Source: Selaginella moellendorffii
Taxonomy: Eukaryota > Plantae > Lycopodiophyta
DNA: 64,000 nucleotides
Reading direction: 5' to 3'
Assembly: GCF_000143415.4 (NCBI RefSeq)
Contig: NW_003314291.1
Span: forward strand, 1,007,702-1,071,701
Shown here: in pieces, positions 8,585-48,975 of the stretch
How positions within the stretch are numbered: the first letter of the stretch is position 1
Layout: the number at the start of each line of letters is the position of its first letter
Position numbers and translations under genes: made by a program
The notes under the pieces: generated by a model
What the model saw: the letters and a program-made list of their open reading frames with translations, nothing else
What the model was told of the DNA's origin: nothing
The model's database searches: none

Positions 8585-9750
8585 GGATGATCGATCAATC
8601 AGATATGCAAAAAGATGCAACTTTGGGAGGAGAAAAAGCCTTCATACCCTGAGGATAGCAACAACTTTTCTTCTAGATCAAAAGCAGCAAGGATTATCTG
8701 TTGATTGACAAGAGAGGATTCGGAGCTCTAGTTTAAAAGATTCCATGAGAGCAATGAAAAGAAGTGGCTATGGAGTGAAAGGAGTAGCCTTTGGTATACC
8801 TAGTATTTTCCAATATTGCTGCTTTACCAACCTGCTTTTAGGCATATGGCCCCAAACAGAATTGTCAAGGCTTGGCTTTGAAAGTTGAGCCATCTCATTT
8901 TTCAAGAAAAAACAGAGAGTAAAAATGCTAAAATATAAAACAAAAACAGAGAAAAACAAAAAACATCCTTTTCTGATGAGCCAGTTTCAAATCTTTAGGA
9001 GGCACTGGAAACTCATTCCACAGCAGCCATTCCTTGTTAAAGTGCAGAAGAACTTGCTCAGTTTTCGCCTTCATTTTCTGCACTCAATCCCTGCGTGCAC
9101 TTTCGTTTTCACCTCCGAAACTGGTTGTTTCTCAGATTGACCGGTCAGAGCGTGTGTATCAAGTGTGAAATGGGCTTTGTATTCTGGTCAAACTGGACAG
9201 TGTAGTGCAGGAAAAAACTATAGTATAGCAAAAGTATATAGCAGTAGTATGTGTGAAGCTATATACGCTGGAATCGACCGACCACGCGTGTTCCTACTAC
9301 TGTAACTATGTCGCCCCCTCGCAAAACACGCTCGCAGCATTTCCCCGGTTCTTCCACACATACATTGTCAGGGGTTGACTAGAGGTAGTGCCCAAAGAGA
9401 AAAAAAAGAGAGAAATAATGGTATGGTCGTGCACCGCGAAATAGTCCCAGGAAGACCGCGCGTTTTTCTTGGCGTGCTCGGTGCGACTTTGGGCTATGGC
9501 TGGTTGGCTGGTAGATTTGGAGGTTTTCTTTTTCGCTCTTCTTCCTTCCGTTTTTTGTTCATTGTCAAACCAACTTTACACGGTCTTTCTTTTTATAAAG
9601 ACGCGGTCGATGCAGCGTTTTCTTTCTTACCAAGTTTTTGGAGTTCTCTGTAGAGATCCCAGGGCGATCGCGGTTGTGGATCAGGAAGACTTGGATCTGG
9701 AGATATCACACAGAGTTCCTTGTAAAATTCTCCCGCGGTCGGCAGAGGCG

Positions 9751-10089
9751 ATGAGGAGCACCAGAGTCCTGGCTTTGATCCTTGTGATGGGTTTATACTG
9801 CTCGGGCTTCATCCAAGTGGCTGTTTCGGCAAGATTGGTTGTCGCAGAGAAGCAGCAGGAGAGCAACGATCATGGAAAAGACCAGGCTGGTGATCATCCA
9901 GCAGCAGCGGTGGAATGGATTCACAAATCTCCTAGCAGCAGCCATGTCTTGCATTCGTCCAATGGAAGAGTGTTTAGCCTCTCGCTCAACAGGATGCCAA
10001 AGAAGGTGACTCCACCGTCGGGGCCGTCCAAATGCCACAACGCGATTTCCACGGCCCGGGCTTCCACCATGGCAAATTGCAGGAACTAA
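9751..10089 (+). CDS. Small secreted peptide precursor 1 (IDA/PIP/CTNIP-like, 112 aa)
   Basis: Signal peptide MRSTRVLALILVMGLYCSGFIQVAVSA, variable region, C-terminal MPKKVTPPSGPSKCHN...C. TATA-like tataaa near 9594. Confidence 0.85.
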   Translation: MRSTRVLALILVMGLYCSGFIQVAVSARLVVAEKQQESNDHGKDQAGDHPAAAVEWIHKSPSSSHVLHSSNGRVFSLSLNRMPKKVTPPSGPSKCHNAISTARASTMANCRN

Positions 10090-10850
10090 CACCAGTGGAT
10101 TCCACTCATTTTTCCTTTCTTTTTTTTGGGTGGGGAGCTTAGATCAACATTGTTAGATAGTCCATTCTTTTCGGCGATTTGGAGGCCAGTGTAGAGAAAA
10201 GGCTAGACACAGACACTCACACTTGTTTTCTTGTCTATAAGAAAGTTTTGTTCTCATGAAAACTTGTATAGAAAACGATCCAAAGCGCTTTGGAGCCAAC
10301 ATGTTTTGACACAAGATTTGGAATCGACAAACCGGCGGCAATTTCTGCTTAGTTGTAACCCAACATCAAATCAATCAAACATCACCAAGAAAAATCTAAA
10401 CAAAAGAATGAGTGAGTGACCCTCCGATTTGTCAAAAAATGGCGGCTCTGAGAATATTGCGTCAATCATGAGACCGGATTGTCAATGGTCAAAGACCACG
10501 TGTCACCGACGTGGCCGAGTAGAAACGCTAGAGAACTCGTAAAAGTCAACCAGCCGAGAACGTAAGTGTGTGTCGATGGATTTCGAAGATCTCCACGCGA
10601 CTATCAAGATCAAGCGGCCTGATCTCCACACAATAGAGTTTTCGATTATCCACAAAGCACTGCGCGGAGATTCCAGCCCGTGGTTCGCATCTCTATATAA
10701 CACATGGGCTGCCTGTTTCCTCCCAGCGAAGTTTCTGGCTGGCTAGCGAGAGATTCACCGCCATCATCAGGCTTGGAAAGTTCGGGCCGCAGCTTGAATC
10801 GTATAAATCCATGCTTCCACCCCGTGCTTTTGATTTCCAGGCCGAGGATC

Positions 10851-11120
10851 ATGTACATGGCTTGTAGAAGAGCTGCAGGTGTTTTCGTGATCCTGGCGGC
10901 GATGGTTTTCCTGGATTGTTGCGGGGCATCGAGGCTTTTAATCGCTGGTGCTGGTGTTGGAGAGTTGTCACAAGGATCATCAAGAGTCTCAAGCCCATCT
11001 TTGCATCTGGAGCAACACACGCTCCCAAAGAGAATACCAGTTCCTCCATCGGGTCCTTCTAGATGCCACAACAGTCTCTCGGCGCGATTCAAAGTTAAGC
11101 GTCCAGGGCCATGCCAGTGA
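10851..11120 (+). CDS. Small secreted peptide precursor 2 (IDA-like, 89 aa)
   Basis: Signal peptide MACRRAAGVFVILAAMVFLDCCGA. LPKRIPVPPSGPSRCHN aligns with the IDA EPIP motif LPKGVPIPPSAPSKRHN. Second Cys at the C-terminus. TATA at ~10694. Confidence 0.88.
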   Translation: MYMACRRAAGVFVILAAMVFLDCCGASRLLIAGAGVGELSQGSSRVSSPSLHLEQHTLPKRIPVPPSGPSRCHNSLSARFKVKRPGPCQ

Positions 11121-13088
11121 CGATCTCCAGTCTCTCACAAACTCTCACAAAAAAAAGCCATTCTTTCCATATTTTTAAATGTTAATAGCAATTATTATTG
11201 TACTAAAGCATATACTTATAAATTATAAACACAACAAAGCTATAGTTGTCCTTTTTACTGTGAGATATATTTGATTAAGCCCATAGTGGCGTATTAACTG
11301 TAATATGCCTGGTAGATGAGCGACAAGGCCATCTTTTCTAGCATTGTTATGCTCGCAAACCCCTTGGTTGGATGTCTCCCAAGTTTATAATTGCGTCGGG
11401 ATCGCGAAACTCTCGCCCGGATAGGATCCACCCCTTCGTGCTTTTGATCTTCTCTCGACAGCCCAATGAAGTCTCGCATCGAGCACAAGCGATGCATGAT
11501 CCGCCGCTGTTCTTCTTTCTTTCTAACGAGAAGATTTTGTCTCGTCTCGGGGCCTGGGACATGGACGCTGAGAGCCTGGTACCATAATGATTTTAAGAAG
11601 CACATTAGTCCAAGCAAAGCTTCCCGACCTGGTCGTGACTGGCAGCAGCAATCCAGTGTGCCTGCCATTTAAGTCTGTGGTGTATAGAATAAGTGTACGT
11701 GCTGGCTGGATCTGTCCCGGCGCTGCACTCCAGAGTGAGTCATCACAAGGTATGTAATCTAGCATTTTTTTCCTAGAGATAAGAACTTACATCCACTTGG
11801 AAGAGCTTCGCACGCAAAGCATATAACGCGAGGAGACACTCCAATGCCATCTGTGACCGTGTTGGAGTTGAACACTTCAAAAGGTTGTGTTGGAAAAAAC
11901 ATCGAAATGCTACAGCAACATGACGGAAGGCTGGCGTTAAAACACAAACGAAACGACCAACAGACCGGCAGTAAAGCAAGGCGAAAAACCATAGAAAAGA
12001 GAAAACGAAAAGGGAGGAGATCAAAAGTCTAAAAGCAAGTGAAAAAAAAAGGAAAAAAGAAGAGGAAGCGGTACCCGTTTGGACAATGCCGGTTCCCGTA
12101 CCGCACCAGTCGGTGATGTCCCACGCGCAGCGATCGATCTCAACTAAAAACAGTGAATCAACTCATTACCAGGCAATACTAAGCAGCCTAGAAACGAAAG
12201 ACTTACCAGTTTCCGTGATGTGATGGAACATAAAACACCGACTGTCGTCGTCCACTGTTGAATCCTAGCAGTCATAATAGAATAAGTAGCAAAAGTCGGC
12301 TCGGCTCGGCTCTAAGAAAATTAAATCTGAAAAAAAAGAAAAGAAAAAAGAGATGAAGAACCAAGACGAGTGGAAGGGTCATATACCTCTGAACGAAGCT
12401 TCACAAAAATGCACTTTTTTGTGAGATTGAACGAAGCTCTACAGTAGGATCCCCTCGCTTTTGCTGGACGCACAGATACTATCCCTTGTGAAGTGGGCCG
12501 GGGAGGAGCTCCTTTCTTACAAAATCCCGTGTCCGATGGCCCTGTGTCCAAACTCTCCTCGTTAGACAAATAAGCTTTCGAGTAAAAGGATAACTCACCT
12601 ACTTCTCGCACCATACTTTACACTCCGTTTTCCCTCTCTTTCGGCTGAACAGCTTAATTTGGTCGCGTCTGAGTCGAGCAAGCGAAAGGGAAACCTGTGA
12701 GGCCGCGACTTGTGTTGATAGAAATCCACACATCTCCCCCCATCTCCATCACAGCTTTCTTTTCTCTTTGCTTGTTGCTTTCCTTCGCTCACTCGCAATC
12801 CCACCTCATCTTCCAGCCAGCGAGAGAGAGCCTCTGTCTGTCTCGGAAGTACTCGCAGCTAGCTACGCTTTCCTTCTTTGATTGATTGAGAGCTCTTCTC
12901 CGCGAGTGCGTGCTTGTTCACCGAAGTAAAGGTTCCCTCTTCCGTCTTGTCCAGCTTCCAAGCTTTCATGCAATTATTTGCCACCGGCGCCACCACTTCT
13001 CGCTAGTCCCAGCTTCATTCTTTCTCGTTGCGTGTCGAGGCTACTCTGAAGATATTCTTGCTGCCCGGCATATGATCGCATCACCACC

Positions 13089-13427
13089 ATGGAAGCAGCT
13101 ACCGACAGAAAGAAGATGACGATCGTCGTGTTGAATTTCATCCTGCTGGGACTTCTCGCCGAGAATGCTTTGTGTGCCAGGTATGGAGTAGCAGGAATTC
13201 CAGCGGCTTCTCCCTCTGCCTCTGCTCTTTCCCATGTTCCGTCTAAGGTCCAGTCTCAATTCTTCACAGTTCCCGCAAAGAAAGAGGCCGATCCAGCATT
13301 GCTTTCCGAGCAGAGAATGATCCACAATATGCTTCCCCGAGTTCTCACCACTCCACCTTCTGGTCCCAGCAGAGGAGGAAACGATATCGGTCTACAGTCC
13401 ACCACGGCCCAGGATAGTGCACCTTAA
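13089..13427 (+). CDS. Small secreted peptide precursor 3 (PIP/IDL-like, 112 aa)
   Basis: Hydrophobic signal IVVLNFILLGLLAENALCA, then MLPRVLTTPPSGPSRGGN. Strong start context (accATGG). Confidence 0.82.
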   Translation: MEAATDRKKMTIVVLNFILLGLLAENALCARYGVAGIPAASPSASALSHVPSKVQSQFFTVPAKKEADPALLSEQRMIHNMLPRVLTTPPSGPSRGGNDIGLQSTTAQDSAP

Positions 13428-14216
13428 GCAGCTAGAACCGGGATATATCTCCATGCATATAAAGGCAGCGAGTATGATATCGAGTCACGTCCTCGGTTTG
13501 TCTGTCTTCGTAAATGATCGTCCGATGATGGTGATCAGTAGTACCGCGGGAACATCCAGCAGGTTTCTCGAGGGACCCCTAGAAAAAGAGGAACAGCTGC
13601 TGCACCAGGAAAAATTTTGTAAGGAGGAGATTGAAGTTTTTTTAATCATAGAGAGCTTACTGTTAGCAGAGATTGTTCATGTACATTTCCCAATGTCTTG
13701 GTTCTTTTTTTGATTCCTATCGTAAACCTGAAAAAAACACAAGTCAGACCAAAGCATAGGTGGTAATCAGTGTAAAACACTGACCGTTCTCCATTCAAAC
13801 AGCACCAACATGGGACTTTAATCACCAGTTTTTGTCTCCAATCCCGGCAGCAACCATCGCTGGCCGGATCTCTTTCGTAAAAGAAAGCCGCAGACTTTGA
13901 AAACTTAAGAACCTGTTTGAATAAAACACTGCAGAGCAGAATAAGAAGTCCAAGATCACATGCTTCACATGCATTCATAACGCACAAATCCATCACAGTC
14001 AAAGCTCAAATCCCCCGAAAAAAAGAAGAGAAACCAGAAGTTTTAGTTTGCAGTTAAGAAACTTGTAGTTAGCACCGAGCTAAAACCACAAAATTGCACG
14101 AAAACACGACCTCCTATAGCTTAGCGTTAAGAAAGCACGGGAGTCTAGGTAGTTACACAACAGCATAGTGTACATTACCAGCAGATCCAAACCCGTTATC
14201 AAGCTTTTATTAGCCT

Positions 14217-16165
14217 TCATACAGCAGCCGGTTGATGTGGTCGACCACCTCGTCGAAACTGTCCACCTCGGTAGCCACCTCTGTAGCCTCCCCGACCACG
14301 AGACCTCAAAAAAGCGTCCCCGAAAGTCTATCAATCAAAGAAACCGAGTGAGAACCCAAACCAAGCACTGACACTCGACTAACCTCAGTGTTGATCTTAC
14401 GTTGCTCTGAAAACCTGGGGCGCTCGGTACCACCCTCACGATCCAGAGTGTCACAGGAGAGAGAATCGAAAAAGTCATCCTTGACATATACCGGCTGAAT
14501 GCAAAGCTTTATCAGAAATGTGATCCATAATGTGAAAGCGTCATTCGTACCTTTTTCCCGTCCTCCGGTTTCTGCCAGTTCTCGCTCACAGGCTCGTCCT
14601 CTCCGTTCCTTGGTTCAACCTTTCCTCCAAGCTCACCCCAAACCTCGTCCTTGTTGAACTTTTCATTCATCGCCATGAAATCAAAGTCCTCCGTAAAGTT
14701 CGTACGTTGAGAAGGCTGTCCATGATATCAAAATAAATACCACAAGAAAGAAGAAAAGCTCGAGTAAACATACCCCACGACCCCTTCCGCCGCGCCTTCC
14801 ATTTCCTCGCCAGTTATACCTTCCGTTGTACTCGTGCCTTTGACCATCGTGCCTCGGACCCTCGTGCCTCAAGTTCTCTGGCCTAGGCCCGTTGTTAGCC
14901 TGCCAAAACCACGTAAGTATGCCAAGACTTTGACAAAACTCTACTCGCACCTGCTGCTCCTTGGAATGAGATGATGACTCTTGCAGAGAGTTTTCGGCAG
15001 GTTGTAACTTCGATGGCTCCACCCCTTCCACTGGCGGTTGCTCGAGTGGAGTGGGAGTGTTCTTCTTCAGCTCTTGAGAGGAATCCAATGGTGCCTGAGA
15101 AACAGACGGCAGCCGTGGGAGCTTGGCGATCGGTGTCAATATCGCCGTCATTCCAACCGAGGAAGTAGTCTCGCGGGGCTTCTCCGTCTCCGGCGGACCT
15201 GTTGGATGTGTCGAGCTCGGCTGACTAACTTGAGGCGGTGGCCGCTGGTCAGGAGGTAAGAGCGGCTGCGATGGCAAATACGGTGGCTGCATTGCGTTTC
15301 CGCTAGGTGGTGGATAGTATCCCGGCCAGTAGAGTGCGTTTCCGACGGGCGGAGGTGGACGAGGACCCCATGCACCCAAGCCGACTGCTGGCGGATATGA
15401 CGAGCTGAGAAAACCCGGTGGTAGCAGCGCCTGTGAGTCACGCGGTGGTGGCATTCCCACTGCAGGATGGGGAATTGCTGGAGCGTGCGAGAACCCCGCT
15501 GGAACTTGAGGTGGTGGAACACCTCCGCTTGGAGGCTGTGGCATTCCTATCGGTGGAGCCATAATGGGTTGAGACATTCGTTGCGCTTTCTGGGGCTGCT
15601 GAGACTGAAAGAAAACAAAACTTGACAGCTTAGTACCTCGTATCATCACAGCATGAAAGCCTCACCTGAGCAATGATCGCCGGATCGTTGTAAGGCTGCG
15701 AATGGACCGCATGAGCTTGCGGAGAAGATTTCACCTGTAAATCCTGGAAAGGAAAGAGGCACAAAAAAAGATAGAAACAATTCAGAGAGGAAACAATGAA
15801 ACCACGGAAGAAATCCATACCTTGATGTCCGACCCACGAAAAATAATGTAGTCATAGACGCTATCCCTGGGAGGAATCTGCGGCCCTTCCTTCTTCCTCC
15901 CTTCGGTTCCATACGAACGAACTGGAAACAAAGCAAGAGCGCACGGATTCGTGAGCTCCCGAGCTCCAACCCTAGCGAAACATCGCCATAGCCTACCGTT
16001 TTGGAGCGCGATGTTGCAGTTCTCGGCGTCGATGGTGTAGAGCACGCCCTCGTAGCGGATGTCGCTCTTGGATGTGAGGCTGATGAGGCTTCCAATGTAG
16101 GAATCGAAGTTGGCACTACCTTTGCTGCTGTCGCCCCCGGGCGCCACGGCGCTAGCGTCCCCCAT
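14217..16165 (-). CDS. DCP5: Decapping 5 / Lsm14 family protein
   Basis: LSm14 domain ([44 protein letters not shown]), Pro-rich linker, FDF box ([16 protein letters not shown]), FFD and TFG boxes, RGG tail. Multi-exon, stop TGA at 14217-14219. Confidence 0.93.
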
Positions 16166-25329: not shown

Positions 25330-28300
25330 TTTTTTAAAAAATTTAATCTAAGTAAATAATCTTACAAAATTATTAAAAATTTATAAAGGGTATATCAATT
25401 ATTTTTTTGGATATTAGGACAAAAATAATGTACTTTATGAGTGCAATAAGATAGTGATTTATCTGTTTCACAAAATTAATTAGGATTGTTTTCAAAAGTT
25501 ACTTACAGAACTGAAATTTGAAAATTTCTTTACTTTATGATTTTTTGGTGAAGATGGAAAAACTTTAATTTTTAAAGTATTTCTAAAATACAAGTAACAT
25601 ATTTATTTTCGTTTAAACTATAAACTAGTATTGAAATAAATTTGTACTAGGGTCAAATTAAATTATTTGGTCATAACCTTGTAGTTTAAACAAAAAAAAA
25701 ATTAATTGTATTTTAACAACACCTAAAAAATCAAACCTTCTTTGTCTTCATTAAGAAATCTTTAAACTTTAGTTCATCAAACAAAATTTTAAAATATTTC
25801 TAATTAACTCTCTCACAAAAATAAATTAGTGTCTCACTGCATATATAATAAATGCTATTTTGTTATCCCAATATTTATAAAAGTGAACTGATTTATCTTT
25901 ACTTAAAATCTAAAAAACAATCAATTTAATTAAAAGATCTTACCAAATAGTTAAAATTTTATAAAGTGTACATCAATTCTTTTTGTGAATAGTAGGACAA
26001 AAAAATAATATACTTTATGTATGTAGTGAAGTGATGATTTATCCGTCTAGGAGAATTAATTATGAATGTTTTCAAAGCTTACTAACATAAATGAAATATG
26101 AAAATTATTTTACTCTATGACTTTTTTGTGAAGAAGAAGAAGCTTTAATTTTTAAAGTATTCATAAAACATAAGAAACATTTTTATTTTCATTTAAATTA
26201 TAAGTTTATGTAAAAACATATAGTGACCAGTTAAGTTATTTGAACATAAACTTCTAGGTTGGATAAAAAAAATAAGTTAATTGTGTTTTAACAACACTAT
26301 AAACATTATGGTTTTTTTATCCTCACAAATATATCTTCAAATAAATTTTTAAGCTTTAGTGCGTCAATCAAATATTTAAAATATTTCTAATTAACTCTTT
26401 CACATAAATAAATTAGTGTCTCACCACTCATATAATAAATATTATTTTGTTATCCCAATATTATAAACGGGAACTGATTTTTCTTTACTTAATGTATTTT
26501 TAAAATTTGATTTACTTAAAAGATCTAAAGTTTAAATCAATTCTTTTTTGAATATTAAAACAACAAAATTAATGTATTTTATGTGTATAGTGAGATGGTG
26601 ATCTATATGTATGAGAAAATTAATTAAAAATGTTTCAATGTTTAGCGAACTAAAATTTTAAAATTCTTTTACTCTATAATTTTTTAATAAAGATGGAGAA
26701 ATTTTTATACACACACTATAATGTGTATGTTATAATCTTCATTGTATTTATGATCATCACTTTACTTGCCATGTGGTCAAATAAAATCATGAGGTAGAAA
26801 TAAGTGTCAAATGTGAATTTTTTTTTTTTCATCACAAATTTTTTGTATATGGTGAGCAAAGCAAACTCAACGAGAGCACTTGATAAAAAAATAGGGGAAG
26901 AAGAGAATGCCGATATAAGAATGTTGTGGGATTATTGAATCTCAACAGCAATGCTAAAATAGGCTCAAGCTACGCAAGGTAAAAATCTTAGCAATCTATC
27001 ATGATGAAGAAGTTTTAATTTTTAAAATATTCATAAAACATAAGTATATTTTATTTTTGTTTAAAAGTATAAATTTATGTTAGCATCTTTTACATATGCA
27101 AAAGCATATAGTGACCAGTTATTGAACACAAACTTATAGTTTGAACAAAAATAATAAGTTGATTATATTTTACTAATACTTTAAAAATCAAAGTTTCTTT
27201 GTTTTTACCAAAAAAATTTAGAGTAAAGAAGTTTTCTTTAGTTCATTAAGCAAACTTTCAAAATATTTTTAATTAACTATTTCACAAATAAATTAGTGTC
27301 TCTCTACACATATAACAGATACTATTTTGTTATCCTAATATTTATAAAAGAGAACTGAGTTCTTTTTACTTAAATTTCTTATAAAAACAATATTTAATTA
27401 AAAAATCTAAAGTCAAAACGTTTCAAAAGTTTGTTTAGCGAACTAAAGTTTGAGGATTTTTGTACTCTAATTTTTTGGTCAAAATAGAAAAGTTTTAATA
27501 CACACACTATAGTGTGTATATTGTAATTTTCATTATATTTATAATTATCACTCACTTTGCCACGTGGTTAAATGTAAGCTCCTATATTTGGACTTCTCCA
27601 TAGATCACCCAACTCAGTACTATTCACACCTAAGGACACTTAACCCTAAATATCCCAAGATCCTTAATCAATTGGAAAAGGAGACACATTTTTGTTTAGG
27701 GGTCTTTTCCTTTTATATTTGAACTTTTATGTTGTTTCTCAAATCGTTTTCTTTAGTTATTTATAATGTACTACGCTGCCCTGCCATATGTTAATCTCAA
27801 CATATGGTGTGATTCCTTTAAGCTAATCTACCATGCTTCCTTGCCAGATGTCAATCTCAACATGTGGTGTGATTCCTTTAAGCTAATCAATAAAGTCTGA
27901 CCCATACCAAATATAAGCTCTTGAATTTGAACTTCTCGGAAGGTCACCCAACCCAATATTATTCAAACCTAAAGACACTTAACCCTAAATATCCCAATAC
28001 TATTAACCGATTGAAAAAAAGAGTGTTTTTTTTTTCATGGCCCTTTCCTTTTATATTTGAACCTTAAGTTATTCCTTTTAGGTGCTTACAATAAGTTTAA
28101 AACTTGAATATTTATTTTTTTATTACTTGCATTTGTAAGGGTTTTTTATGTGTGGCACACAAAGTTAGATCAATAAAAGCACTTGACAAAAAAAAAGGGA
28201 AGAAGAGAATGCCAAGGTAAAAGTGTTATGAAATTACCAAGTTTCAATTGTAGCGCCAGGACAAATTCAAGCTATACAAAGTAGAAATTTCAACAATTTC

Positions 28301-28530: not shown

Positions 28531-28599
28531 ACGTGTCGCGCCTATATAGGCTTTTCTCTCCACATCTACCATGTCCGTGCGTCACGCCCTCTACTTCCA

Positions 28600-28790
28600 C
28601 GGTACACGCCGGCCTCGACTACCGCGACGCCGAGGTCGCCCGCGGCGGCATTTACCTCGTGCCCAGCGCCCCCATCATCGAGGCCGAGTACCGCGCGCTC
28701 GTCGCCTGCCTCCACACCGCCTCCCACCTCCGCGTCTCAATCCTCCGCGTCTATGGCGACTCCCAGCTCGTTGTCAACCCGGCGGAGTGG
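28600..28790 (+). pseudogene. RNase H-like (RVT_3-type) fragment
   Basis: IEAEYRALVACLHTASHLRVSILRVYGDSQLVVN matches the RNase HI-like EAEY..L / GDS.LV.N pattern. Truncated. Confidence 0.7.
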
Positions 28791-28841
28791 TACGCCCGGA
28801 GCCCTCTCACGCAGGCCCGGGCGATTAGCCGCGAGAGATTT

Positions 28842-29916
28842 ATGGATACAATGGCGAGCCTGCGCTCTTCTGCCGCACCGGTAGCACTCGCGTGTTTTGA
28901 TTCGACTCATGCTAGGAATGTAGCTGTCGGCAGCGCCTTGGATCGCGCAGCTCGGAATCGCCAGTTCTTGGTGGCGCCGGGGCGGATTCCATCGGATTTG
29001 CCAGGAAATCTGTGGGCAGGGGCTATGTCTTGGACGTCCATCCACTCTGCTACCGCGGGAGCAAGCCGGATTCCAGCGAGTTTTTGTGGTGGATGAGAGC
29101 GTTTCTTCGCAGGATTGTGCTTGCCGATCCAGTGATTGCTGTAAGTCTCGTTTTGTTGTTGCTGGATTGGATGAAATGCGAGTGTGTAGCGCAGGTTTTC
29201 GATGGCGAATTTGGGAATGACTATAGGAGAAAAATTCTTCCTTCTTACAAGGCTGGAAGGAGGAAATTCAAGCCTCTAGATCCGAGCTTCAAATGGACAA
29301 GAGGTTTAGAGGCGAGTTTCTCTCGTTTCCAACGCTTTCTTCGACAGTGTAACATACCTGTAAGTCCTCGATCTTTCATTTTTCCTTTTTCCATGAGCTA
29401 AAACTCGAAGTTCTTTGCTGACAGGTTGTGAAAGTTGATAATGCTGAAGCGGACGACGTCGTTACGACACTAGCTCGGCAAGTTACCGACAGGAGTTTGA
29501 AGGCAGTCATTGCATCCCCGGATAAAGATTTCAAGCAGCTGGTTTCGGAAGAAGGTCTAGCTGCTGATTCCGTTCGCGGATCTACGAAGGTGGTCATTTT
29601 ACACTGTCAAGGATTACGTTGAACAACACAAATGCGAGCCTGGGATTGAATTGGGACTTCGTAAGCATCCAGTTTCGTAAGTTTGGCTGATTATTCCAAA
29701 AAAAATTCTTTCCTAGGATGCTTGCTAGGGGATGCTGCTGATGGTGTTCCCGGTGTGCCTGGTTTTGGACGGAAAACAGCTCTGAAACTTATGAGGAAGC
29801 ACGGCTCGCTAGAAAATCTATCAAGTGTAGCGGCAATTGGAAGCCATACATACAAGATGCTCTCAAGCGATCTTGCTGCATTCCAATGGCTGGAGAAGGA
29901 ACTTGAAACGTTGTAG
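28842..29916 (+). pseudogene. Organellar 5'-3' exonuclease (OEX2-like), disrupted copy A
   Basis: YVLDVHPLCY, VFDGE.GN.YRR.ILPSYKA, EADDVV.TL, SPDKDFKQL, GD.ADGVPG. Frameshift near 29550 and deletions relative to copy B. Confidence 0.85.
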
Positions 29917-31859: not shown

Positions 31860-32110
31860 AAGAACAAACTTTTGCTCGTTCTTACCTTCGCTTTGCACCG
31901 ATTGTTGTACCATAGCTAGCCAGCCGGTTGCAAACAGGTTTCTCATAGAACTTACATTTTGTGTTTGCAAAGCCGACTGAGAGTGGCTGGATGCTTGTTT
32001 TTTTGTGAGCAAAGGGCCACGATCTACATAAACACTCGGGAAACAAACTGAAAGAGCAAGCCCACCAAATTTCTCCTTGCCATCCCTTGTTCCTACGAGA
32101 GCTCCTCCGC
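31860..32110. pseudogene. Internally deleted copy of RopGAP 3' flank plus the ACB-domain gene, partly inverted
   Basis: aagaacaaacttttgctcgttcttacc... matches 24491 onward and gagagtggctgga matches ~24725. 32020-32110 is the reverse complement of ACB-gene-derived sequence. Confidence 0.8.
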
Positions 32111-32319
32111 CAGCAGAAGAGAGAATATATGCTCTAGAATAACATCCAAGCATATAGTTATGTACAAGAAAATCATGAGCTGGTATCATGAAATGTGGTA
32201 ATCCCCAAGTCAAAATCGTGATATTTTGTTACTATCTAGGCAAACTTTTTTGTTTTAAATTTCAAATGAACGAATATACTTCAACTTGAGATGCCACACA
32301 GCCGGCCATAATTTACCAA

Positions 32320-35110
32320 ATTCAAATGAATTAACATGCCAGCTGAGCAATTTACATGTAATTTGGAATGTGATTCCTTATTATACAAAAAATTACCATG
32401 GATTCAAATAAGTTACCATGCAATGCCAACCGAGCGGCTTACATGTAATTCCTCACGATAAAGAAAATTACCATGGATTCAAATGAATACCATGGGATGC
32501 CAACCAGGTATAGTTTAGAATGTGATTCCTCACTATAAATCAAATTACCATGGATTCAAATAAGTTACCATTTTAAATTTTCCCATTGTGTCATGAAACT
32601 GGGAGATTAAAAAACTTGCTATAACCTTCTTGGCAATGATGGAAAGGGATGTTTGCAGTTGGTCATCTTGATAGATCCATTCAAGCCTTTCTAAAGATGC
32701 CTTAACGCCATTGGGATTCCTCAAAACAAAAAGAGGAATGCTATGGCAATTGTAGCTGCACATGCTATGGATAGCCTGGAGTGTGTGGAGATCTGATCCA
32801 ATGGATGCCATAACAATTTTTAGGGTTTGTCAGGCATAAATAAGGTTTTTGGTGCCATGGTGAAGATGAAAAAATAAAAAACAAAAGGTAAGGTAATAAT
32901 ATTTGTTAAGTATATAAAACCCTTTTAATCAAATTAAATTTCCTTCTGAGAAGTTCAGGCAAAAGAATTCACTTTTGCACACTTTAATCCACTAACAATA
33001 CACACTTATAAAACAATCAAAATTTTACAAATTGTATATTAATTCACTTTCATAAATATTATGACAATAAAATAGCATCTCTTATATGTTATTAATGCCA
33101 TGAGATAGTAATTTATCTGTGTGAGATAATTAGTTATAAATATTTTGAAAGTTTGCTTGACGAACTAAAGTTTGAAAAATTTTTTGCTCTAAGATTTATT
33201 GGTGAGGACAAAGAAGCTTTAAGTTTTAAAATGTTGCTACATCTCATTTTAGTTCAAATTATTAATATGTGTTCAAATAGTTTAATTGGTCACCATATGT
33301 AAAACTAATCACTATATGTTTTTACATATGTGATAGAGATTACATAAATTTGTTTGGATGCAATATTATAGTTTCAACAAAAAAAAAAAGTTGTTTGTAT
33401 TTTAAAAATACTTTAAAAATTAAAACTCTTTCATCGTTACTAAAAAATCATAAAGTAAATAAATATTTAGACTTTAGTTCACTAAGTAAACTTTTGAAAT
33501 GTTCTTAATTAATTTTTTCAGATAGATAGATCATCTCACTACACATATAAAGTATATTATTTTTTAATATTTATAAAAAGAATTGATATACAGTTTATAA
33601 AATTTTAACCATTTAGTAAGATCTTATAATTAGATCAAATTTCTTACTAGAAATTTAAGTAAAGAAAAGTCACTTTTTCATAAATATTATAACAGCAAAA
33701 TAGCATCCTTTATATGTGTGGTGAGATAGTGTATGAGATAGTTAATTAAAAATATTTCGAAAATTTGCTTAACAAATTAAAGTTTTAAAATATGTTTTGC
33801 TCTAATATTTCTTGATGAGGACAAAAAAACTTAAAATATTAAAATGTTGCTAAAGCACAATCAACATCTCATTTTGTTCAAATTATAAACTTGTATTCAA
33901 ATAGTTTAATTATTCACTATATGCTTTTGTATATGTGATAGAGATTAAGCCTTGAGGTTTCTAATATCCCTCAGTATAATAAGACATAAAGATGGGAGCT
34001 TTTAAATCTCAAGCCTTAAAACAAACTTGTTTATATACAACCTTATAATTTGAATGAAAATAAAATGTTGATTGTGTTTTATGAATATTTTAAAAATTAA
34101 AGTTTCTCCATTTTCAAAAAAAATCATGGAGTAAATAAATCTTTGAATTTTAGTTTACTAAAAAACCTTTTGAAATGTTACTAATTAATTATTTTAAATG
34201 ACTAAATCATAATCTCACTGCACATATAAAGTATATTATTTTTGTTATCCTAATATTCACAAAAATAATTCATATATACTTTTTAAATTTTTAACCATTT
34301 GCTAAGTTCTTTTAATTAGATTGAATTTTTTTGGAAAATTTAAATAGAAAAAAATAATTTATTTTCATAAATATTATGATAAAAAATAACATCTTTTGTA
34401 ATTTTCTTTATCATAAGGAATTACATGTAAGCTGCTCGACTGGCATTGCATGGTAACTTATTTAAATCCATGGTAGTTTGCTTTATAGTGAGGAATCACA
34501 TTCTAAATTACATCTGGTTAGCATCCCATGGTAATTCATTTAAGAAAAATGAATTAGAAAAATTTTAAATTTTTTTATAAACTAATTTTTAAAGATATAT
34601 TTACTCTAAATTATTTTTTTGAAAACGGAGAAGATTTTATTTTTAAAATATTCCTAAAACACAACTAACATTTTTATTTTCATTTAAACTAGAACTTTGA
34701 GATTACACAAATTTATTTTGGTATTTATCATATATGTAGAAGCATATAGTGAACAATTAAGTTATTTGAATGCAAACTTATAATTTAAAAAAAAAAAGAA
34801 ATATTAATTGTGTTTTAACAACATTTTTAAAATTAAAGTTCTTTTGTCCTCACCAAAAAATCTTAGAGCAAAGAAGTATTTAAACTTTAATTTGTTAAAT
34901 AAACTTTTAAAATATTTCTAATGAACTATCTTACACAGATAAATTACTATCTCACTAAACATAAAATGGATTCAAATGAATTACCATGGGATGCCAACCA
35001 AGTGAAATATAATTCCTCCCAATAAGGCAAACTATTATGGATTCAAATCAATTACCATGTGATGCCAACAAAGCTTTTAGTAGAATGTCCTCATGCTAAA
35101 GCAAATTACC
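32320..35110. repeat. Short attaccatggattcaaat repeats in both orientations, enclosing inverted family-A units
   Basis: Motif recurs at ~32392, 32467, 32544 and 34965-35110 on plus, and as the reverse complement at 34400-34540. Family-A units lie on minus at 33050-34390 and on plus at 34550-34960. Confidence 0.7.
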
Positions 35111-37689: not shown

Positions 37690-39760
37690 AGCAGAGGCTG
37701 GTGTGGTAAGCCAGAAACAACATTCTCACCCATGCCATTCACTCTTCTAGAAGAGCTAAATTGATTGATTCAAAAATAATCTTATGCCAAAGCTATAAAT
37801 ATATTTGATTTTTCAACAATAACATGATAATGGTATTTTTACACTTTTATAGTTCCTTTTACATCAATTGAGACATATGAACTTGTTTTCCCTATAAATC
37901 TTTACAATTGTGTTTTCGATCTTAATGCTGGCATATATCATCATTACTAGTAAAAAGAAATAAAAGCTCACTATTTGCCAAAAGCTCATACTCAAACTAT
38001 TGATTACATTAGCCAAAAGAAATTATTAGATTTCTAAACAATAGAACATTAGAAAACATAAATGTACACAGTTTTTAGATATCCAAAGTCACTTCTTTAT
38101 TAAAATTTTAATGCCCTTGCTTTGAGCTGCTTAAAAAAGCTTTCATTGCAACTCCAGTACCAAACCATAATACACTGGTCTGAAGCTTCATTTGCAGAGA
38201 AAATTCTTAAAGTTATTTGTAGCATCTTTGTAAGTTAAACTTTAAACTCTGAATTTGAGATTTTGGCTCGAAACCATAAAACGAAATCAGTATGTAGGCT
38301 AGAATTCTTTGTTCTTCATCTTAATTATACTTAAAGTGCCAAACATTTAAATTAGAATATATAGCTTATAATAATATTCTCAAGAATATTTTAGAATGGT
38401 GCTAATCTGATCTTAGCAGCCATGTCTATAGGCAAAGCTTCAATTTTTTTCCTTTATTAGCTAGTGCTATGAGAGATACCATGAAAATAAAGAACCCCTC
38501 AGGTAAGTCAAAGCTTTTGATAGGTCTGCGTAGTCACACTTTAAATAAGGCAGTGGTGTTCAAATCATCCAATGATCACCACCACATAGGCCCAAAGCTG
38601 CTGCACTGCTTGCATATACTTTTGAAAGGCAGCTTTCATCTCCTTATCTCACCAATCAAAGCACCACTAACTTAAGTTTTTACTGGAGAAGGAAATATCC
38701 ATCCACTCTCAAGCTTAAAAAACTTTCCATAGAAAGGAGCTCTTTTGTTATGGGTACATTGCTAGCTTGTCTAGAATGACATGAAATTTACTTGGTGTTT
38801 TAAGAAAAGTACATTATAAACATGAAAAACAGAATTAAATTAGATGGTTAAATACACTAGAACATTCTAATATATTCTAGGCATATCTACAAGAATAAAT
38901 TTAATTTAGTCATATAGTATTTTTACAAATAAATCAAAGTTGTAACAAGCTTACAACAAAAAAAACATTCTTGCCTATGCCATTCACTCCTCTGGAAGAG
39001 ATAAGTTGATTGATTCAAAAACAGTCTTATGCCAAAGTTATATATATCTAATTTTCTTAATGAGATTGCTATATGAATGATACTTTGGAAAACTAATTTG
39101 ATTAACATGATAATTACATTTTTACACTCTTATGCTCAGTTGAGACATATGATACTTTATAAAGCTCTGAAGTCCAATGTCACCAACTTTGGCAACTATA
39201 TCAGAACTTAAAATATATTTGTTTTTTTATAATATTTCTATTAATTATCAATCTTGAGAGAATTTTAAATCTATACAAACTCTTTTACCCTCTAAAGCAA
39301 TTTACACTTGTGTTTTCCATCTAAAGGTTGTCTGAAACCATAACAGAGGCACAAACCATCATTACTAGTAAAACGAAATAAATTTCATCATATAAGTGCT
39401 CTTGCAATGTTCTTTTTCTCATACACTAATTAATATAATATCAGACTATTTATTACAATACCCAGGAAAAGCTACTAGGTTTTGAAGCAATAGAATAAAA
39501 GTCACCTCTGTATTGAATTCTTAATACCCTTGCTTTGAGCTGTTTAATAAAGCTTTCACTGCAACTTCAATACCAAGCTATCATACATTGGTCTGAAACT
39601 TCATTTGTCAAGAAACTTTTTAAAATTATTTATGGCATTAATTACATCTTTGTAAGTGAAAGTTCTGTGTTTGGAGATTTTAGCTCTAACCATAAAATAA
39701 AATTAGTATATAGCTTACAAAACAATATGAACTTAAATTCTTTATTCTTCATTCAAAAAA
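37690..39760 (-). pseudogene. Two decayed LRR-I receptor-kinase kinase-domain remnants (about 37690-38300 and 38960-39760)
   Basis: Minus strand near 38100-38235 reads DATNNFKNFL..SFRPVYYG..VAMK..SSSKQG..FNKE, versus [37 protein letters not shown] in the intact RLK. DIYNFGI and VSIDVKGT remnants. The two blocks are direct repeats. Confidence 0.7.
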
Positions 39761-39949
39761 ACATGTGAAATCTAGAAATATATAAATTATAGTTTTAATT
39801 ACCAAATCACTCCTATACCACAAATGATACTATAGCTTGTTAAAGAAATGACAAACATGATAAAGAGGTTTATATATAATTTATAAAAGAATAAAAATAA
39901 TACTAGAAGATAAATATCTTTAAAAAAGCTTTAGAATTTAATGAATGTA

Positions 39950-41120
39950 TTTAATTTTTAAACTATTCCTAAAACACAAGTAACATTTTATTTTCATTCA
40001 AATTATGGGATTGCATTTAAACAAATTTATATTAATCTATATCACATATGCAAAAGTGTAAAGTGACAAATTAAATTATTTGGACATAAACTTGTAGTTT
40101 GAAGAAAAATAATAAATTTATTGTGTTTTAACAACATTTTAAAAATCAAAACTTCTTTGTCCTCACCAAGAAATTTTAGAACAAAGAAATCTTTAAACTT
40201 TAGTTTATTAAGCAAACTTTTGAAATATTTTTAATTAACTTTTCAACACAAATAAATTAGTGTTTCATCACACATATAATAAATTCTATTTTGTTATCCC
40301 AATATTTATAAAAGGAAATTGATATTTTATTTACTTAAAATTTAAAAAAATTTAATTAATTAAAAAATCTCACCAACTATAAAGTGTAAGTAATCTAGAT
40401 TTGTTGTTTGTATGGAAGGAAGATTGACACACTTATATGTGTGTATGCGTGAAGCCTACCAAAGTATTATTTTGTGATAAAAGATGGAGGTATGCTTCTG
40501 CTTAACAATGTGATGAAGCTAATTTTCTTTCTTTTGCAGACAGTGAAATTGAAATATAGAAAATTAATTAAAAGCGTATCAAAAATCTTTACTTTATGAT
40601 TTTTAGTAAAGGGAGAAATTTTAATACACAAATTACAGTGTGTGTATTGTAATCTTTATTATATTTGTAATCATCACTTGCCTCACTATGTGGTTAGCTA
40701 AAATTGTAAAGTGGGAATAAGTTTAAAACATAAATATTTATTTTTTTATTTTTTTGTTATTTCGTCATAAATGTTTTTTATGTGTGGCAAGCAAAGTAAA
40801 CTTAACAATAGCATTTGACAAAAAAAAGGGAGAGAAGAGGAAAATGTCAAAGTATGAGTGTCTTGGGATCACTGAATCTCAGTAATATATCAAAACAAAT
40901 AAAAAACAAAAGTTTAAATTAGACAAAATAACTCTATTATTTATTTTGCATTTTCAATATATCTTTTACACTAAAAATACAAACATAATAAACAAATTAC
41001 TTTACTTTTTGTTCTTTATTTTTTCATTTCCACCAACATTTTATTCACCCTATAGAAAGTAAAAGAAGTAATTTAATTTATTTGCCTTTAGAGAAAGCTT
41101 TTTAACTAATGTTTAAATTG
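39950..41120 (+). repeat. AT-rich family-A unit and terminal segment
   Basis: Same anchors as 25330-28530; 40717-41120 parallels 28091-28520. Confidence 0.75.
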
Positions 41121-45989: not shown

Positions 45990-48975
45990 TTAAGGATCTT
46001 GCCAAAATTTATTGTATATAAATATTTTTTGTGGATATTAAAACAACAAAAATAATGTAGTGAGATGATGATCCATCCGAGAAAATTAATTAGGAAAATT
46101 TCAAAAGCTTGTTTAGTAAACTAAAGTATGAAATTTTTTTTACTCTATAAATTTTTAATGAAGATGAATTTTTTTTTAATTTCTTAAGTATTTTAAAATA
46201 TAACTAACATCTTATTTTCGTTCAAACTACAACTTTAAGTCTACACAAGTTTATCTTGATCTCTATCACATATACAAAAACATTTAGTAACAATTAAGTT
46301 ATTTAAATGCAAACTTATAGTTTGAAAAAAAGAAAAGATGTTGGTTGTGTTTTAGAAACATTTTAAAAATTAAAGCTTTTTATCTTCACCAAGAAATCTT
46401 AAAGCAAAAAATTTTTAAACTTTAATTCATCAAAAAAACTTTTGAAATATTTCTAATTAAATTTTTCATAAAAATAAATTATTATCTTACCACATATAAA
46501 AGGGATATTATTTTCTTGTCTCAATATATATAAAAGAAAATTGATCTCTACTTAAATTAAAATATCTTACCAAATGGTTAAAATTTTATAAAGTGTATAT
46601 TAATTCATTTTGTGATTATTAGAACAAAAAAAATAATATACTTTATATGTGTAATGAGATGGTGATTTAGCTGTCTAAGAGAATTAATTAGGAAAATTTT
46701 AAAAGTATTTTTGTAAACTAATTTTTAAAGATTTTTTTACTCTATAAATTTTTTGTGAAAATGGAGAAGCTTTAATTTTTAAAGTATTTCTAAAACACAA
46801 CTAACATTTTATTTTTATTTAAACTAGAAATTTGAGGCCACACAGGTTTATTTTGGTATCTATTATATATGCAAAAACATATAGTGAACAATTAAGTTAT
46901 TTGAATGCAAAGTTATAGTTTGAAAAAAAAAAGATATTGGTTATATTTTGACAATATTTTAAAAATTAAAGCTTTTTTTTCCTCACCAAAAAATCTTAAA
47001 GCAAAGAAATTTTTAAACTTTAATTCGTTAAATAAACTTTCAAAATATTTCTCATTAACTATCTTACACAGATAAATTACTATCTCACCAAACATATAGA
47101 AGATGTTATTTTATTGTTCCAATATTTATGAAAATAAATTGATTTTTTTGTATTTAAATTTGCCAAAAAATTTTAATCTAATTAAAAGAACTTAAGAAAT
47201 GGTTAAAATTTTATAAAGTGTATATGAATTCTTTTTATAGATATTAGGATAACAAAAATAATATACTTTATATGTGTAGTAAGATTATGTCACAAATGTG
47301 ACTTCAGGTATCGAAAGATACGTGTCGGCCAGTCCTTACGGACACTTTTTCCTTATTACTATGACGGCAGGAGGTTAGTACAGTTGGGTCCCTTTATCGT
47401 TCCCTCTTGAGTTAGTTGAGAAACTGGTCAATGACCTTGCACTTAAATTAGATAAACATAAGGTAGGAACCCTATGTGTTTCTTGCTAAGCATACTTGGC
47501 CTGGTTTGAGAAACTCGTGTCATTGATTTGCATTTGCTAGTATTAAGAACCCCCACGATATTGAGACTAGTCCCTCAATATCGCCGAATGATAACTTACC
47601 GTGTATGCCAAACATGCTCGCTATTATGCCCTTTGTGTTAGTCTCATTTCGGTCTCAAATGTTATTTGTGGAAAGTGTCTAAATTTGCTCATTTGGCATA
47701 TCTACAGAATGTAGAGGTCGGCCTGAACACAATGGTGTTCGTCTCATGTCCAAATTCACAATTTAGCGCCATTCCATATTTAATAAATTTCGAGTTTGTC
47801 TTAGAGACTAACTCCTGATACTAAGGGAGGCTTGGGGTGAAAGCCCAAAGCATGTGTCTTTCAAGGGGGGAGGGGGGGGGGGGGGGACACGCGGGCTTCT
47901 AAATGTATAGTAAGGATAGTGGTTGAAATGCATGTCTAACCATCTGAGATATTAGTTTGGCTCCCGTTGGGCTGTGTTGCTCCTTGTTTTACGTTCGGCT
48001 TAAGTCTAAGCCCAAGTTCTACACTACTCTAGTCGGTGGGGTACCTTCTTCCTCGCATTAGGCCACTGGTATGCCAAAATTGTGCCAGACTCCGTCTGAC
48101 ACCATTTTGCGTGCAGGTGCTAGATACGGGGAGCTGGTGCTCGTGGGATTGTACCGGACCTTCATTTCGTAGTGCAACGGGCTTGGAGTTCAGCTCCAAA
48201 TTCATGTGCGCTATAGATTATGATCTAGCCATTTAAAATATTTAATTAGTAACATTTCAAAAGGTTTTTTAGTAAATTAATGTTTGAAGATTTATTTACT
48301 CTATGATTTTTTGTGAAAATAGAGAAATTTTAATTTTCACAATATTCATAAAACACAATCAACATTTTATTTTCATTCAAACTATAAGTTTGAATATAAA
48401 CAAGTTTGTTTTAAGGCTTGGGATTTAGAAGGTCCCATGTTTAAGTTTTATTATATTAAGGGATATTAAGAACCTCAAGACTTAATCTCTATCATATATG
48501 TAAAAGAATATAGTGAACAATTAACTATTTGAATACAAATTTGTAATTTGAACAAAATGAGATGTTGATTGTGTTTTAGCAACATTTTAAAATTAAAAGT
48601 TTTTTTGTTCTCACCAAGAAATATTAGAGCAAAAAAAGTTTTAAAACTTTAATTCATCAAGCAAACTTTCGAAATATTTCTAATTAACTATCTCACACAT
48701 TATCTCATCACACATATAAGGGATGCTATTTTGTTGTTATAATATTTATGAAAACAAAATGATTTTTCTCTACTTAAATTTCCAGCAAGAAATTTGATCT
48801 AATTATAAGATCTTACCAAATGATTAAAATTTTATAAACTGTATATCAATTCTTTTTATATATATTAAAAATAATATACTTTATATGTGTAGTAAGATGA
48901 TCTATCTTTTTGAAAGAATTAATTAAGAACATTTCAAAAGTTTACTTAGTTAACTAAAGTCTAAATATTTATCTA
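45990..48975 (+). repeat. AT-rich family-A array interrupted by an LTR-type insertion
   Basis: Unit anchors at ~46588 and ~47213. 47100-47287 plus 48216-48975 is the reverse complement of ~33460-34390. Confidence 0.8.
47288..48215. mobile_element. Probable solo LTR (928 bp) with 5-bp TSD GATTA
   Basis: gatta|TGTCAC...GCTATA|gatta. The paralogous empty site (reverse complement near 34208-34215) has a single gatta. Confidence 0.75.

Follow-up and report, generated by a model that had tools for sequence, protein, structure and literature searches.

Signalling by the peptide IDA through HAESA receptor kinases governs cell separation in flowering plants and feeds into immunity, yet the age of this signalling and the origin of its relatives (CTNIP/SCREW, PIP and CLE) are still debated. 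IDA and the IDA-LIKE (IDL) peptides were reported as absent from Selaginella (Vie et al. 2015). Furumizu et al. 2021 (Plant Cell, PMC8462819) then listed SmIDA1-3 of Selaginella moellendorffii as "potential IDA orthologs", which tBLASTn had picked out of unannotated DNA and which were modelled on SmHSL2; the same paper counts three HSL-clade receptors in this lycophyte and presents in-silico SmHSL2 models. The subject here is a 64-kb stretch of S. moellendorffii DNA ("the window", whose positions serve as coordinates throughout), in which three tandem open reading frames (ORF1, ORF2 and ORF3) were analysed. On the sequence evidence they are most probably anciently duplicated, intronless genes for secreted prepropeptides of the IDA/IDL family:

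9751-10089, forward strand: ORF1, prepropeptide of 112 amino acids with signal-peptide-like residues 1-27, a variable region and the motif MPKKVTPPSGPSKCHN (encoded at 9994-10041)
10851-11120, forward strand: ORF2, prepropeptide of 89 amino acids with signal-peptide-like residues 1-26 and the motif LPKRIPVPPSGPSRCHN (11022-11072)
13089-13427, forward strand: ORF3, prepropeptide of 112 amino acids with signal-peptide-like residues 1-30, the motif LPRVLTTPPSGPSRGGN (13332-13382) and the tail DIGLQSTTAQDSAP

The original prediction for this stretch had described three co-oriented, intronless reading frames of 112, 89 and 112 residues, each with a signal peptide and with only a motif in common. 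The list of open reading frames confirms the frames, and the motifs stand exactly as they were quoted. PPSGPS is present in all three, with MPK, LPK or LPR three to four residues upstream, and SGPS is followed by KCHN in ORF1, RCHN in ORF2 and RGGN in ORF3, so that HN occurs in ORF1 and ORF2 and a terminal N in all three. When aligned, the proteins have in common their start (Met, an Arg and a hydrophobic stretch) and (L/M)P(K/R)-x3-4-PPSGPS-(K/R)-x-x-N; the rest cannot be aligned, and DNA similarity is limited to 31 bases at the motif. The precursors end in ...NCRN (ORF1), ...GPCQ (ORF2) and ...DSAP (ORF3). The 15-residue tail of ORF1, ending CRN, places Cys95 and Cys110 within the 112 residues (the second Cys third from the end), and the tail of ORF2, ending CQ, places Cys72 and Cys88 within 89 (the second Cys penultimate); ORF3 has no Cys pair. 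At all three N-termini a basic n-region precedes a hydrophobic core, whose best 11-residue Kyte-Doolittle mean is 2.7-3.3, and a c-region of small residues follows (VSA, CGA and LCA). Read heuristically, by eye and hydropathy, these are consistent with the predicted signal peptide in each case. Chance is not a credible source of the frames, because a six-frame scan of the whole window finds exactly these three PS[GA]PS sites; chance was also rejected on the conservation between haplotypes and on the profile matches described below.

A profile of 32 columns (A2), built from the C-terminal regions of the three ORFs and searched against 1.84 billion representative proteins, gave 79 matches at E ≤ 1e-3. 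These comprise an allele of ORF1, angiosperm precursors of 70-110 amino acids, a set with xCHN, and multi-module proteins. The angiosperm precursors dominate; they carry LPKxxPIPPSGPS(K/R)(K/R)HN near the C-terminus, and one, from Quillaja, is named "Protein IDA-LIKE 2". Compared by BLASTP with the EPIP motif of Arabidopsis IDA (sequence taken from PMC6971993), ORF2 is identical at 12 of 19 residues, with equal LPK-to-PPS spacing. In a protein-language-model Atlas, ORF2 stands beside clusters of PF27884 "IDL5" (Pfam 38.1) with a score of 0.92 and 193 shared features, and ORF3 beside PF27884 clusters as well (0.92, 190 features), there with a recognition value below the usual threshold. A Pfam-A copy older than PF27884 recognised none of the three ORFs and no bona fide angiosperm IDL either, and a homologue search with ORF2 alone yielded 4 candidates and no match. 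The trio has the architecture of IDA/IDL genes, which are small and intronless and whose products, under about 110 amino acids long (here 112, 89 and 112), run from a secretory signal peptide through a variable stretch to a conserved C-terminal part (Vie et al. 2015), and all three possess the core S(G/A/V)PS within PxPPSxPS after an LPK-type site. None has the (R/K)(R/K)HN straight after SGPS by which Vie et al. 2015 recognise IDLs; the xCHN deviation also occurs in proteins deposited under the name IDL (P0111) and bearing PF27884.

Of the wider IDA/PIP/CTNIP superfamily to which the trio had been tentatively assigned, the IDA/IDL part is thus upheld by profile, EPIP and Atlas, and the other two parts are not. 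In PIP/PIPL peptides GxGH forms the very C-terminus, with nothing after it (Vie et al. 2015); none of the three ORFs ends in this way. The CTNIP family is defined by two conserved Cys spaced 9-11 residues together with the CTNIP motif (Rhodes et al. 2022); 14 residues lie between the Cys of ORF1 and 15 between those of ORF2, there is no TNIP, and ORF3 has no Cys pair. In layout ORF1 and ORF2 come close to CTNIPs, of which they are nonetheless not members.

By analogy with Arabidopsis IDA, the signal peptide would be removed from each precursor, a subtilase would cleave C-terminal to (L/M)P(K/R), and PPSG-P-S would be hydroxylated at its central Pro, with release of a peptide of 12-14 residues bearing a C-terminal Asn. 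Such a peptide may then occupy the groove of a leucine-rich-repeat (LRR) receptor kinase of the HAESA/HSL clade and recruit a SERK co-receptor.

A lycophyte host, entertained as a condition in the original prediction, is supported: a neighbouring U-box gene falls in a cluster of at least 90% identity with S. moellendorffii XP_002985895.2 and SELMODRAFT_123188, both of which sit on a different, 998-kb scaffold. A second haplotype of the locus (L001, GL377635.1:102636-123832) matches at 98.4% identity across 12.9 kb, where 168 differences occur, and all three ORFs are intact on it. The alleles of ORF3 are identical at 339 of 339 nucleotides, and those of ORF2 encode the same protein, with a single synonymous change at Leu30. 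ORF1 has seven changes, of which four are replacements (G19S, A27G, D44H and Q45R); none falls outside the signal or variable region, and the final 60 residues are the same in both alleles. ORF2 and ORF3 together show 1 haplotype difference where 7.9 would be expected (P=0.003), and the three peptide-bearing ends show 1, synonymous, against 4.9 expected (P=0.04). Haplotype diversity is low around ORF3, with 6 differences in 12501-13500, and at this local rate zero differences in 339 nucleotides have a probability of about 0.13, so that the identity of the ORF3 alleles is by itself non-significant. Whichever two paralogues are compared, they use different codons at five of the six PPSGPS positions, among them TCx versus AGC for Ser. 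These codon differences, together with the lack of DNA similarity beyond 31 bases, point to old duplicates in which the motif appears to have been held at the protein level under selection.

The trio contains two subtypes. Angiosperm single-module matches were sorted by their tails into HN(D/S)IGLQ...P (class A), HNSV... (class B) and xCHN (class C), and a hidden Markov model (HMM) was built for each. ORF3 scores 36.1, 16.1 and 9.3 bits on classes A, B and C, respectively. Its tail, DIGLQSTTAQDSAP, fits class A to the final residue, with 58% identity over 31 amino acids to protein P0074. ORF3 is thereby a predicted linear IDL type with a DIGLQ...P tail, in which the His before the terminal Asn has been lost.

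In ORF1 and ORF2 a Cys takes the place of the second basic residue (K/R-C-H-N), and a second Cys lies near the end of the precursor. A profile (A3) made from four angiosperm xCHN proteins together with ORF1 and ORF2 reaches 217 proteins at E ≤ 1. Their sources are eudicots, Amborella, Nelumbo and Tetracentron, and their consensus reads ...LPRGPVPPSGPSxCHNKL(D/S)P...DY(I/V)xCP. Among the xCHN proteins of two match lists, 107 of 109 have a tail Cys (penultimate in 103 of the 107), compared with 2 of 46 non-xCHN proteins, counts that are not phylogenetically independent; in the angiosperm xCHN proteins the distance from Cys to Cys is 13-26 residues, with a mode of 20. The ORF2 12-mer PVPPSGPSRCHN recurs unchanged in the Rosa protein P0111, which was deposited as "IDL3", and in P0105 and P0112, and the best five matches of ORF1 outside Selaginella all belong to this Cys-pair subgroup. 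Both ORFs have the layout of the subgroup (a Cys third from last in the 12-mer and a second at the precursor end, third from the end in ORF1 and penultimate in ORF2). On the class C HMM they score 30.7 (ORF1) and 31.8 bits (ORF2), where true members reach at least 47.5 and linear IDLs at most 28.6, and for ORF2 the linear class A gives 36.7 bits, above its class C score. The class C scores of both ORFs are intermediate, and the class HMMs gave ORF2 no clean placement. The idea that PF27884 "IDL5" might be specific to the Cys-pair type was also dropped, since the nearest Atlas clusters of ORF3 carry PF27884 as well.

Homology between the Cys pair of ORF1 and ORF2 and that of the angiosperm subgroup is plausible and not proven. 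The tails of ORF1 and ORF2 cannot be aligned with the angiosperm tails and have nothing in common with them but the position of the Cys, and for this reason the pairs could be convergent. Tentatively, and with more doubt than confidence, ORF1 and ORF2 may be true homologues of the PVPPSGPSxCHN...CP subgroup standing beside a linear IDL gene, so that IDA-type ligands capable of forming a disulfide would have been present in the vascular-plant ancestor. If so, such ligands would have their origin in a tandemly duplicated IDA gene and would long predate the NUT/HSL3 receptor clade of seed plants, which reads looped CTNIP/SCREW/DEP peptides; Selaginella, with only three HSL-clade receptors, would be a minimal system in which to study how linear ligands are distinguished from looped ones. 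The angiosperm subgroup is probably the family of AT2G01379/AT2G25125, which Bai et al. 2026 flagged as a possible new single-disulfide peptide family; this identification comes from a depositor's label, "like AT2G01379", on one member.

A looped form of the ligand itself is the strongest alternative to a linear, IDA-type peptide from ORF1 and ORF2, and is possible, if somewhat doubtful. The tail would be kept, the two Cys joined in a disulfide, and a longer looped ligand extending to the precursor C-terminus, as in CTNIP/SCREW, would be bound by a receptor of the HSL clade whose C-terminal pocket is wider. In CTNIP4(41-70), LFQALQRGPVRGSGRNGCTNIPRGSGRCHN, the bond between Cys58 and Cys68 is essential (PMC13585564), and recent structures place an IDA-like PVPxSGP(N/S) segment of SCREW2 in a pocket common to HAE-IDA (PMC13261660). 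The first Cys of ORF1 and ORF2 falls at the position of CTNIP4 Cys58 (core-C-x-N, compared with ...GRNGCTN... in CTNIP4). The second lies one to two residues from the precursor end, as in CTNIP4 (which ends C-H-N) and the 103 angiosperm members ending C-P. The co-occurrence of motif Cys and tail Cys counted above, the lack of either Cys in ORF3 and the single-disulfide candidates of Bai et al. 2026 also fit a loop. Yet the loop would span 14-15 residues (about 20 in angiosperms) rather than the 9-11 that define CTNIPs, neither ORF has a TNIP motif, and receptors of the NUT/HSL3 clade are reported from gymnosperms onward only. IDA receptors, moreover, need HN as a free C-terminus, and in ORF1 and ORF2 it is internal; since it is internal in the precursor, both the linear and the looped peptide would require a processing step.

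Transcription was followed in four RNA-type runs from four studies, as unstranded contigs placed on 9200-13900; the runs were taken as RNA because their contigs show short GT..AG introns. The units concerned, with the existing gene model, are as follows:

9688-10184, forward strand (assumed from the ORF): transcribed unit of ORF1, from the extent of an RNA contig of run X4
10663-11206, forward strand: transcribed unit of ORF2, from the joined contigs of runs X4 and X10
9496-10089 of the window, 8498-9094 of L001: gene model of ORF1, SELMODRAFT_424795
12599-13596, reverse strand: exon of about 1 kb in a spliced RNA, taken as a long 3' isoform of an LSM14/DCP5-like gene, with ORF3 antisense inside it

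ORF1 lies within a discrete contig of run X4 that is colinear with the genome and whose first ATG stands at 9751; in run X10 it is covered in part. ORF2 lies under a contig at 10663-11106, with further contigs at 10848-10993 and 11008-11206 from another run. The colinearity of the contigs fits the lack of introns in both genes. Transcripts, whose absence would have told against the original prediction, are thus present for ORF1 and ORF2 as separate, unspliced contigs; over ORF3 the RNA is accounted for by the antisense exon. In the region of the ORF1 signal peptide, a low-depth contig of run X10 skips 43 nucleotides (9789-9833, GT..AG ends) with a shift of frame, and could represent an artefact, a rare splice or a variant allele.

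The only annotated member of the cluster is the ORF1 allele, present as the hypothetical 168-residue protein SELMODRAFT_424795 (EFJ12965.1), which has an upstream start and a 90-nucleotide intron. RNA depth over 9357-9670 is nil in all four runs; the 112-residue ORF1 is preferred for this reason, and the 5' end of SELMODRAFT_424795 is probably incorrect. Neither ORF2 nor ORF3 has been given a gene model, and no exact match to the reading frames of 112, 89, 112 or 138 amino acids occurs among 15 billion predicted proteins, so that the cluster is indeed as easily missed as had been supposed. Upstream of ORF2 there is an in-frame ATG at 10704 in good context, with TATATAA near 10694. Three haplotype differences fall in 10704-10850, and because two of them would be replacements, this interval is suggested to be 5' untranslated region.

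At ORF3 the RNA comes from the other strand. The coding sequence of the LSM14/DCP5-like gene stops near 14217, and spliced minus-strand RNA extends some 3 kb beyond it, to about 11241, with at least 6 short (57-68 nucleotides) GT..AG introns and a depth about one third that of the gene body. The joints of exon 12599-13596 read CT..AC on both sides, the introns being GT..AG on the minus strand. This RNA contains no open reading frame longer than 137 amino acids and nothing that prolongs the LSM14-like coding sequence; it is either a long, intron-rich alternative 3' untranslated region or a separate non-coding RNA. ORF3 might then be an unexpressed paralogue, decaying or silent, with all RNA there belonging to the LSM14-like transcript, an explanation that is unlikely. 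All nearby splice junctions are minus-strand and ORF3 lies wholly within the exon; GGN has replaced (K/R)HN, local haplotype divergence is low, and the Atlas recognition value is under threshold. Against decay, neither haplotype shows any break in the reading frame, signal peptide or motif, all of which are the same in both, the DIGLQS...AP tail matches angiosperm IDLs to the last residue, and the motif has been retained while its codons diverged from those of the paralogues. Peptides ending in G-N also exist, such as MpCLE1 (...PIGN; PMC8462819).

Several points weigh against the assignment of the trio to secreted, IDA-type precursors. The steps of peptide release, processing and reception are modelled on Arabidopsis IDA, and the signal peptides are a judgement by eye and hydropathy. 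ORF1 and ORF2 lack the IDL signature of Vie et al. 2015 and ORF3 the conserved His, and protein libraries yielded no orthologue from another lycophyte. The placement of ORF1 and ORF2 with the Cys-pair type is marked by about 31 bits on its HMM against at least 47 in true members, with ORF2 slightly higher on the linear classes, and by the chance of convergence noted above. The RNA contig of ORF2 begins 5' of the ATG at 10704, and translation from there would bury the signal peptide. The antisense spliced transcript fully explains the RNA cover of ORF3, any plus-strand RNA of which is putative. The IDA/IDL assignment nevertheless remains the most probable reading of the trio. That the peptides belong instead to the CLE family, or are CLE/IDA intermediates acting on CLV1/BAM or TDR-type rather than HSL-type receptors, is very improbable: CLE and IDA do have a PSGP core and terminal HN in common (PMC8462819), a CLE_plant cluster is among the lower-ranked Atlas matches, and Zhang et al. 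2020 initially took PVPPSGPSPCHN genes as "IDA-like CLE candidates", but the three ORFs continue after PSGP with S-(K/R)-x-(H/G)-N, as in IDA, and not with the N-P-(L/I) of the CLE 12-mer (xxxPSGPNP(L/I)HN), their upstream LPK site and its spacing fit the IDA EPIP motif, the best profile matches are IDLs, and Zhang et al. 2020 themselves group the PVPP type with IDA/IDL.

Other proteins and features were noted in passing. Several eudicot proteins (P0007, P0009, P0012, P0014, P0018, P0044 and others) carry 2-5 tandem modules of the form (F/G)MLPKxxPxPPSGPS with a Pro-rich spacer and without the HN end. They have the MLPK...PPSGPS half of the IDA motif in common with ORF1 and ORF3, and for some the annotation reads hydroxyproline-rich glycoprotein or "proline-rich proteoglycan". 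P0010 (KAJ7538441.1, 834 amino acids), from Diphasiastrum complanatum, has about eleven LLPxGxNPPSGPNPGHN modules, in which the upstream residues are IDA-like and the end is CLE-like. Within the window, neighbouring reading frames are plant genes (a U-box/ARM protein, a DUF26 protein and a CRIB-RhoGAP). The blocks 26001-28000, 32001-34000, 38001-40000 and 46001-48000 have a very low G+C content (0.26-0.29, versus 0.45-0.50 elsewhere) and are probably transposon remnants; an RVT_3-like reading frame lies at 28533-29096.

The proposal of an early vascular-plant IDA is no new idea, because SmIDA1-3 of the same species were reported in 2021 (PMC8462819). The trio extends the known IDA family and introduces no new kind of signal or signalling principle. 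It does provide concrete lycophyte genes, backed by both haplotypes and, for two of them, by RNA, and in the S. moellendorffii annotation it mends one gene model and supplies two that were lacking. With both the DIGLQ-tail and the xCHN/terminal-Cys subtypes in a lycophyte, the locus is moderately interesting for how HSL ligands evolved. It also opens to direct test the age of the Cys-pair subgroup, which was not flagged as a possible single-disulfide family until 2026.

Among described systems, SmIDA1-3 are of the same species and family as the trio; compared by description (PMC8462819), they may or may not include ORF1 and ORF2. Neither the exact 10-mers nor the SmIDA names led, in a full-text literature search that did not extend to the Furumizu et al. 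supplements, to a paper giving these sequences in print. ORF3 is not one of SmIDA1-3, because His-Asn is stated to be conserved in those. There is no word of a tandem cluster or of a Cys pair in the main text of that paper. With the PIP/PIPL peptides, ligands of RLK7, the trio has in common the SGPS core and the architecture of a secreted precursor. CTNIP/SCREW, the ligands of HSL3/NUT, have in common with ORF1 and ORF2 an IDA-like N-terminal core followed by Cys-x-Asn and a second Cys near the precursor end, which in CTNIP/SCREW is two residues away; they differ in their degenerate core (PVRGSGRN) and TNIP loop, and peptides and receptor clade alike are known from seed plants only. Angiosperm IDA/IDL (Arabidopsis IDA and IDL1-8; PF27884) are the same kind of small gene without introns, whereas in the trio (R/K)(R/K)HN is altered to KCHN, RCHN and GGN and the tails measure 14-15 residues, compared with "up to 13" in IDA/IDL. 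The IDL class that includes IDA-LIKE 2 has the N-DIGLQ..P tail in common with ORF3, which reads GGN where the class has (K/R)HN. The angiosperm Cys-pair subgroup (the "PVPP-type" PVPPSGPSPCHN of Zhang et al. 2020) combines xCHN with a Cys at the extreme C-terminus, as do ORF1 and ORF2; the Selaginella tails are shorter, with 14-15 residues between the Cys where the angiosperm mode is 20, and are without KL(D/S)P...DY(I/V)xCP, while in ORF1 and the subgroup the same three residues separate (L/M)P(K/R) from PPSGPS.

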